Made by a program: the position numbers and the translations under genes | Assembly (NCBI RefSeq): GCF_001194135.2 | Contig: NC_068982.1 | Location: 150,650,247-150,714,246 of the forward strand | Reading direction: 5' to 3' | Source of the DNA: Octopus bimaculoides | Taxonomy: Eukaryota | Length of the DNA: 64,000 bases | Shown: in pieces, positions 24 through 60,629 of the stretch | Numbering within the stretch: the first letter of the stretch is position 1 | Layout: every line of letters begins with the position of its first letter | The notes under the pieces: generated by a model | Database searches by the model: none | What the model was told of the DNA's origin: nothing | Seen by the model: only the letters and a program-made list of their open reading frames with translations

Positions 24-60629
<60,606 letters not shown>

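Follow-up and report, generated by a model that had tools for sequence, protein, structure and literature searches.

Gene structure at the locus

The stretch of DNA analyzed in this study (the window) comprises 64,000 nucleotides of the Octopus bimaculoides genome (contig NC_068982.1, positions 150,650,247 to 150,714,246). It has a GC content of about 34% and many microsatellites, is eukaryotic in character, and contains about 1,630 codons of an intron-rich gene that encodes the tail end, the linker, AAA1, and most of AAA2 of a dynein heavy chain. The domains follow one another along the minus strand in the order expected for such a protein, that is, DHC_N1, DHC_N2, AAA_6, and the AAA2 P-loop. 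The exons referred to below are, in the order of transcription:

60635-60279 and 59891-59619, minus strand: two tail exons, Pfam DHC_N1 4.6e-37 (Pfam, tblastn)
31903-32271, minus strand: largest linker (DHC_N2) exon, 6.9e-62 against PF08393 jointly with the other DHC_N2 exons
22148-22372, minus strand: linker exon YPTQICQLAVLYLWSREVEKG... (splice sites, tblastn)
18426-18537, minus strand: exon QTLYLRDTLNTICRKRVKHCTDFDWRRYLKCYLVSDN, end of the linker and start of AAA1 (donor ATG/gtaagt; tblastn)
16935-17131, minus strand: exon with the N-loop and Walker A, starting in phase 1 (acceptor ttcttatcag/AC, donor AAG/gtgatt)
16398-16496, minus strand: AAA1 exon SLANVIAQFYYLLKCNPHFDASSIQRIIQGSSM (splice sites, tblastn)
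15117-15254, minus strand: AAA1 exon with the degenerate Walker B (splice sites, alignment, motif table)
12509-12735, minus strand: AAA1 exon with the degenerate sensor-I loop (splice sites, motif table)
11052-11208 (3' end approximate), minus strand: AAA1 small-domain exon, FTLS followed by the family-specific insertion KYGEKPNTVRPESQVSTPTSK
9614-9756, minus strand: exon TPSTTSRQSQ...IDLSTLLQSIEETLHPALDNN at the AAA1S/AAA2 junction (tblastn, relaxed search)
24-131, minus strand: AAA2 exon QLKNGDIVPINGNVKTFIETDSIGSASPMTITKL, containing ASPMTITK (tblastn, alignment)

The closest orthologue, the Argonauta hians protein GAB1604755.1, was mapped to the window by tblastn, and its residues 503-2130 fall on the exons in the expected order and reading frame, with no stops, at 63-70% identity; three apparent gaps, at 54181-54122, 27071-26979, and 9754-9614, were filled by relaxed searches. 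Because of this mapping the gene is judged to be intact, and an old pseudogene is ruled out. The Walker A exon (17131-16935) matches residues 1589-1675 of the Argonauta protein, its acceptor has a strong polypyrimidine tract and AG, and its phases fit those of the neighboring exons 18537-18426 and 16496-16398, in frame. A candidate exon in the ORF 10488-10805 ('AVLLYFALNK...') was rejected, the Argonauta protein mapping to 9756-9614 instead.

The assembly is a draft, and the five N-runs of the window (38365-38916, 552 bases; 2175-2184 and 13568-13577, 10 bases each; 62709-62732, 24 bases; 63567-63594, 28 bases) are all intronic or lie clear of the mapped exons. An intron of the dynein gene contains, at 55856-57139 on the plus strand, the remnant of a Tc1/mariner-type transposase, split between two frames (HTH_23, 3.8e-4; DDE_3, 8.3e-7). 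Behind a PHD-finger-like ORF (2.9e-5) come repeated ORF fragments of the type '...RRLRWYGHV.RMDEDS...GRGRPRKTWD...' (178-441, 639-881, and 1226-1468, plus strand; 21478-21642, minus strand), which have no Pfam match and look like retrotransposon 3' ends. Many introns also contain a dispersed repeat with the translation '...FLQLDALPNANH.ESVMG...CH.HKGQSGGTG...', seen as minus-strand ORFs at 1715-2164, 16037-16222, 26055-26294, 46570-46839, 52786-52926, 57812-58204, 58793-59113, and 62478-62744; this is probably a SINE-like element, or an interspersed element of another sort, that is abundant in this genome.

The Walker A motif of AAA1

The motifs of the nucleotide site and of the adjacent AAA2 domain, together with their canonical counterparts, are:

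16970-16947, minus strand: AAA1 Walker A (P-loop), GTPDAGKK (translation, alignment to GPAGTGKT of solved dyneins, motif table)
15242-15225, minus strand: Walker B, canonical GCFDEF, here LCLADG (motif table, alignment)
12702-12688 (MTAAF), minus strand: sensor I, canonical ITMNP and GYAGRxELPEN, here MTAAF and SEESNWYFARN
11180-11169, minus strand: sensor II, canonical FGLR, here FTLS (alignment)
6765-6742, minus strand: AAA2 Walker A, GPPGSGKT, intact (GP[SA]G[SAG]GK[ST] in the canonical sequences aligned)
50-27, minus strand: AAA2 motif, canonical ASPATVSR, here ASPMTITK

An earlier note on this DNA, made from its letters without database searches, had pointed to a dynein heavy chain AAA1 in which the Mg-coordinating Thr/Ser of Walker A is replaced by Lys. 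On the minus strand the codons from 16970 to 16947 are GGA ACA CCT GAT GCT GGA AAG AAG, that is, GTPDAGKK, exactly as described there in plus-strand numbering, and the Lys that stands in place of the Thr is encoded by AAG at 16949-16947. The reverse complement continues with GAA ACT ATT AAG, giving the ETIK that the note had placed directly after the P-loop, and then with the GT donor (AAG/gtgatt). The changed adenine-binding N-loop SIIMTP is likewise present in the same exon, 22 codons upstream of Walker A, at 17054-17037 (minus strand). The remark that A-to-I editing of AAG could never restore Thr follows from the genetic code, the possible products being GAG, AGG, and GGG (Glu, Arg, and Gly).

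The assignment to AAA1 is borne out by Pfam, phmmer, and the motif table. Since the three AAA1 exons match PF12774 AAA_6 ('hydrolytic ATP binding site of dynein motor region') with 8.9e-25, and a phmmer search against PDB sequences (E=6e-17) pairs each residue of GTPDAGKKET with its counterpart in GPAGTGKTET of solved dyneins, the resemblance of the Walker A exon to dynein AAA1 is, on these scores, no chance similarity. A six-frame scan of the window for G....GK[STK] found no second AAA1-type P-loop exon, including a mutually exclusive canonical one; it returned the AAA1 site, the AAA2 P-loop (6742-6765), and one non-coding chance match only.

Degeneration of the whole AAA1 site

The change in Walker A is accompanied by changes in all the other motifs of the site. 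In the phmmer alignment CFDEFNR of solved dyneins corresponds to CLADGNK in the window, with the Walker B Asp replaced by Ala and the catalytic Glu by Asp. The sensor-I Asn is replaced by Ala, the sensor-II Arg by Ser, and the Arg of the AAA2 motif ASPATVSR, which we take to be the arginine finger reaching into AAA1, by Lys. The gene was thus found to be devoid of the intact canonical AAA1 site of the motile DNAH5/8 type (GPAGTGKT, hhhhDE, sensor-I Asn, and sensor-II Arg).

Judged from the alignments, every catalytic element around AAA1 is substituted; the residues that define the fold, the splice structure, and the P-loop of AAA2 are preserved. We predict that AAA1 is catalytically dead, with or without a Thr restored at the Lys codon: because the losses extend to Walker B, sensor I, sensor II, and the AAA2 Arg, a restored Thr would still give no working site. 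Since both Mg2+ ligands, the Walker A Thr and the Walker B Asp, are gone, and the phosphate loop carries an acidic residue, normal Mg-ATP binding is unlikely; the candidate site is probably either empty or occupied by a nucleotide without Mg2+, and Mg-ATP binding may have been lost altogether. An AlphaFold2 model of the 652-residue linker and AAA1 region, built from a six-row alignment, was too poor to use (mean pLDDT 43.6, pTM 0.29).

Class and family placement

A 652-aa concatenation of the linker and AAA1 exons was compared with PDB sequences. Among the best 60 matches listed, the closest solved relatives are DNAH8 (9fqr_I3, 294 bits), DNAH5 (8j07_n0, 293 bits), and the Chlamydomonas outer-arm gamma chain (270 bits), and dyneins of other classes score at most 219 bits. 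Because of this difference in scores the gene is assigned to the outer-arm gamma/DNAH5-8 type.

An exhaustive HMMER search of 1.84 billion protein representatives produced one close relative, the Argonauta hians protein, annotated as 'dynein axonemal heavy chain 5 isoform X2' (70% identity over 365 aa). The next-best matches come from the frogs Hymenochirus and Leptobrachium and the caecilian Rhinatrema (5251 aa, 'dynein gamma chain, flagellar outer arm-like'), followed by the bichirs Erpetoichthys and Polypterus ('DYHG'), the annelid Dimorphilus (5326 aa), the orthonectid Intoshia, and the sponge Sycon (5434 aa, 'DNAH5-like' or 'DNAH8'). In a word-indexed search a 66-aa exon query returned no homologue, a 1,142-aa query found at least five proteins, and a six-sequence profile at least seven. 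In a neighbor-joining tree of 102 sequences and 598 columns, the window gene and the Argonauta protein group together in 200 of the 200 bootstraps, and they form one clade with the Sycon, Dimorphilus, Intoshia, bichir, and amphibian proteins in 197 of them.

This set of taxa recalls DNAHX, a subfamily of non-motile heavy chains described by Chai, Suchenski Loustaunau, Zheng, Yang & Zhang (bioRxiv 10.1101/2025.01.18.633724, a 2025 preprint). The type sequence is Lytechinus variegatus XP_041462850, a DNAH8-like annotated protein of 5272 aa that is abundant in sea-urchin sperm. According to these authors, DNAHX splits off from the outer-arm alpha (DNAH5/8-type) chain; it ranges from sponges and placozoans to bony fish, gastropods, and frogs, with none in reptiles and mammals; it carries insertions before sensor II in AAA4S, in CC1/CC2 of the stalk, and in the MTBD; and its AAA1 motifs are variable among members and always unlike those of motile dyneins. 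In the urchin protein the Walker A residue T1988 is changed to V2221 and the sensor-II residue R2160 to K2393. Cryo-EM has ATP trapped in its AAA1, with the motor permanently in the pre-powerstroke state, and the chain paired with another heavy chain ('dynein-X'). The authors link DNAHX to external fertilization (Chai et al., bioRxiv 10.1101/2025.01.18.633724).

Since the taxa and, outside the octopods, the unusual length of the proteins in our clade match those reported for DNAHX, the clade was taken as DNAHX, relying on what Chai et al. describe of its taxa, lengths, and motifs. The type sequence itself was not returned by the HMMER or profile searches, nor is it among the best 60 PDB matches listed. 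Very probably, the window gene is the cephalopod DNAHX, a membership that rests on the described relatives and features and not on a direct reciprocal hit to XP_041462850.

The members of the clade have several derived states in common, namely PVTEK for PLTDR, YLRD for VHQRD, and the loss of FDEFNR, TMNPGYAGR, and the sensor-II Arg. The degenerate pattern of Walker B, sensor I, and sensor II is kept from the sponge to the amphibians (motif table). In AAA2, the Arg of ASPATVSR is changed to Lys in the bilaterian members aligned and to Gln in Erpetoichthys, and is kept in the sponge. The Lys change, which is not mentioned in the accessible text of the preprint, could serve as a simple marker of the DNAHX family. 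In a full-length alignment the Argonauta orthologue has the family-specific insertion at the AAA1S/AAA2 junction and, assigned by alignment position, putative family insertions in AAA4S ('PW.G'), stalk CC1 ('D.YDEEF'), and the MTBD; Rhinatrema, Dimorphilus, and Sycon have insertions at matching positions. The junction insertion is present within the window; AAA4S, the stalk, and the MTBD are outside it.

The octopod proteins differ from the other members in the linker. Both are devoid of a disordered insertion of about 70 aa (window ~25027-29357, minus strand) that is found in the sponge, annelid, bichir, and amphibian proteins, and the distance from FPRFFF to the next conserved helix is 72-90 residues in octopods versus 118-153 in other members. 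The Argonauta gene model has 4378 aa, versus about 5,200-5,400 aa for DNAHX, an unusually long protein in which the tail and the linker carry disordered insertions. The shorter octopod proteins and the use of neighbor joining on fast-evolving sequences would suit an independent, cephalopod-specific degenerate duplicate of DNAH5/8 that is drawn to DNAHX by long-branch attraction. We consider this quite improbable, as the AAA2 change from Arg to Lys, PVTEK, YLRD, the AAA4S 'PW.G', and the stalk 'D.YDEEF' are hard to obtain by convergence, and as DNAHX is reported from gastropods, so that molluscs do have the gene (Chai et al.).

The initial hypothesis, identity with DNHD1, the other 'orphan' heavy chain with a degenerate AAA1, was dropped after the PDB ranking, with DNAH8 and DNAH5 at its top, and the DNAHX preprint. 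Like the window gene, DNHD1 is described as being without the Walker B catalytic residues and as carrying insertions. However, the best relatives of the window gene are by a wide margin of the outer-arm gamma/DNAH5-8 type, the DHC_N1 tail is present, the nearest proteins are named DNAH5, DNAH8, or 'gamma chain-like' in their sources, and, according to Chai et al., DNHD1 has no sequence homology to DNAHX beyond that of the dynein family. DNHD1, compared by description, is therefore the least probable of the explanations that we considered.

A decaying pseudogene of an outer-arm dynein heavy chain might also be expected to have lost its catalytic motifs and to evolve fast, here at 63-70% identity to another octopod. 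Yet the approximately 1,630 codons contain no stop or frameshift in exons, the splice sites are canonical AG/GT where examined, the phases are consistent, and the AAA1 region (70% identity to Argonauta) is no more diverged than the linker and AAA1 together (63%). Moreover, only catalytic residues are lost and structural ones kept, in the pattern that recurs from sponge to amphibians, and the urchin DNAHX is an abundant protein of sperm (Chai et al.). Such decay is very improbable.

Two further proteins in the tree deserve a comment. One, P0023, a 4481-aa protein from a 19-kb contig of an ENA metagenome, comes out as the sister of the DNAHX-type clade in 200 of 200 bootstraps and combines GPAGTGKS with degeneration of both Walker B (FDNLH) and sensor I (TLNL). 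The other (P0017, XP_044147017.1, 'DNAH8' of Bufo gargarizans) groups with canonical DNAH5/8; its motifs read GPAAAGKT for GPAGTGKT, FDEFSR for FDEFNR, and TMSPKHADFQ for TMNPGYAGRQ. This protein may represent a second, independent decay of AAA1 in an outer-arm-type heavy chain.

The lysine as a probable lineage-specific change

Among the aligned family members, the residue after GK is Thr in Argonauta, Dimorphilus, the frogs, the caecilian, the bichirs, and Sycon, Gln in Intoshia, and Lys in the window only. In the sea urchin DNAHX it is Val (Chai et al.). The Lys of the window and its sensor-II Ser are 172 residues apart, and so are the two urchin substitutions; this identical spacing implies that the same Walker A residue was hit in both proteins.

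The alignment with orthologues proposed in the earlier note was carried out, and it makes the Lys lineage-specific: Argonauta has GMPGTGKT and the Walker B sequence LAEGNK, and the window GTPDAGKK and LADGNK. Since Argonauta shares the Walker B Ala and keeps GKT, we infer that the Walker B Asp was lost already in the octopod ancestor, and that the loss of the Walker A Thr and the change from Glu to Asp came later, in the lineage of the window. The retention of GMPGTGKT in A. hians likewise indicates that the change from Thr to Lys is recent and specific to this lineage, a base error being the less likely reading.

In the case of an error in the assembly or sequencing, the true codon would be ACN and the P-loop GTPDAGKT. 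A single base separates ACG from AAG, the nearest orthologue has Thr at this position, and the assembly is a draft with five N-runs. Against this, three more residues of the loop differ from Argonauta (M to T, G to D, and T to A), and the position is free to vary in the family, as the Val of the sea urchin and the Gln of Intoshia demonstrate. In addition, both octopods have lost Walker B, sensor I, sensor II, and the AAA2 Arg, and a Thr would not revive the site. We therefore consider an error unlikely, if the least improbable of the alternatives, and the Lys probably genuine.

Comparison with known heavy chains

The window gene shares with DNAHX its origin from an outer-arm DNAH5/8-type chain, the retained tail and linker, AAA1 substitutions in sensor I, in sensor II, and at the identical Thr of Walker A, and a sponge-to-amphibian set of taxa that includes molluscs. 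It differs in that the urchin protein is described as keeping Walker B and ATP in AAA1, whereas the corresponding Walker B residues are AD in the window and AE in Argonauta, and in that the Walker A Thr is Val in the urchin and Lys, together with an Asp in the loop, in the window. Further differences are the absence of the linker insertion from the octopods, the 4378 aa of the Argonauta model compared with 5272 aa in the urchin, and internal fertilization in octopods, in contrast to the external fertilization to which DNAHX is tied by its authors.

With the outer-arm gamma-type chains (human DNAH5 and DNAH8, Chlamydomonas ODA2 gamma, and sea urchin OAD-alpha) the gene has in common about 293 bits over 640 residues (DNAH5/8), the domain order, the linker sequence, and the canonical AAA2 P-loop. 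However, these chains are active motors with GPAGTGKT, FDEFNR, TMNPGYAGR, FGLR, and ASPATVSR, all of which are changed in the window. DNHD1, a vertebrate 'orphan' heavy chain whose mutations cause sperm flagellar defects, is similar in its degenerate AAA1 without Walker B catalytic residues, and it is described as presumably non-motile with a role in flagellum assembly; compared by description only, it differs in having a separate evolutionary origin, the window gene being nearest to the DNAH5/8 type. On these comparisons the window gene appears as an extreme, unusually degenerate member of the known DNAHX family and no new kind of motor.

Proposed function

We suggest that the gene is an orthologue of DNAHX, a metazoan duplicate of an outer-arm gamma/DNAH5-8 heavy chain that would have turned non-motile. 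AAA1 would no longer be the hydrolytic motor site and would have a structural role within the ring. Constraint is evident on the fold-bearing sequence, the tail, the linker, and the AAA2 P-loop, all of which are retained. By analogy with the cryo-EM of the sea-urchin protein, the conserved tail would pair with another, motile heavy chain, and the locked, non-stepping partner would be the proposed 'phi template' of an autoinhibited, phi-like particle, with a role in the packaging or transport of axonemal dyneins during flagellum assembly in spermatogenesis. In the octopod, the gene product may be such a non-stepping, tail-dimerizing partner chain acting as a phi template.

More tentatively, the lineage of the window could have gone one step past the urchin DNAHX and hold no Mg-ATP, so that its lock would be nucleotide-free, or the Lys would stand for Mg2+ and clamp metal-free ATP. 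We regard this step as possible rather than probable.

The octopods, the caecilian, Dimorphilus, and the orthonectid Intoshia are presumably internal fertilizers. DNAHX-type proteins are found in Argonauta (P0006), Rhinatrema (P0009), Dimorphilus (P0156), and Intoshia (P0122), as well as in the window gene, which sits badly with the proposed link to external fertilization and widens the distribution of the family to internally fertilizing animals. For annotation, the names 'DNAH5' or 'DNAH8-like' on DNAHX genes wrongly imply an active outer-arm motor.

Only the 2025 preprint has described DNAHX, and the function proposed for it has the status of a model. The window gene, in which both Mg2+ ligands are lost, and its counterpart in the sister octopod, in which GKT is kept, form a natural pair for asking whether the pre-powerstroke lock needs trapped ATP. 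If the further step in the lineage of the window is true, it would, together with the presence of DNAHX in internal fertilizers, revise both the mechanism of an ATP-trapped lock and the link to external fertilization.
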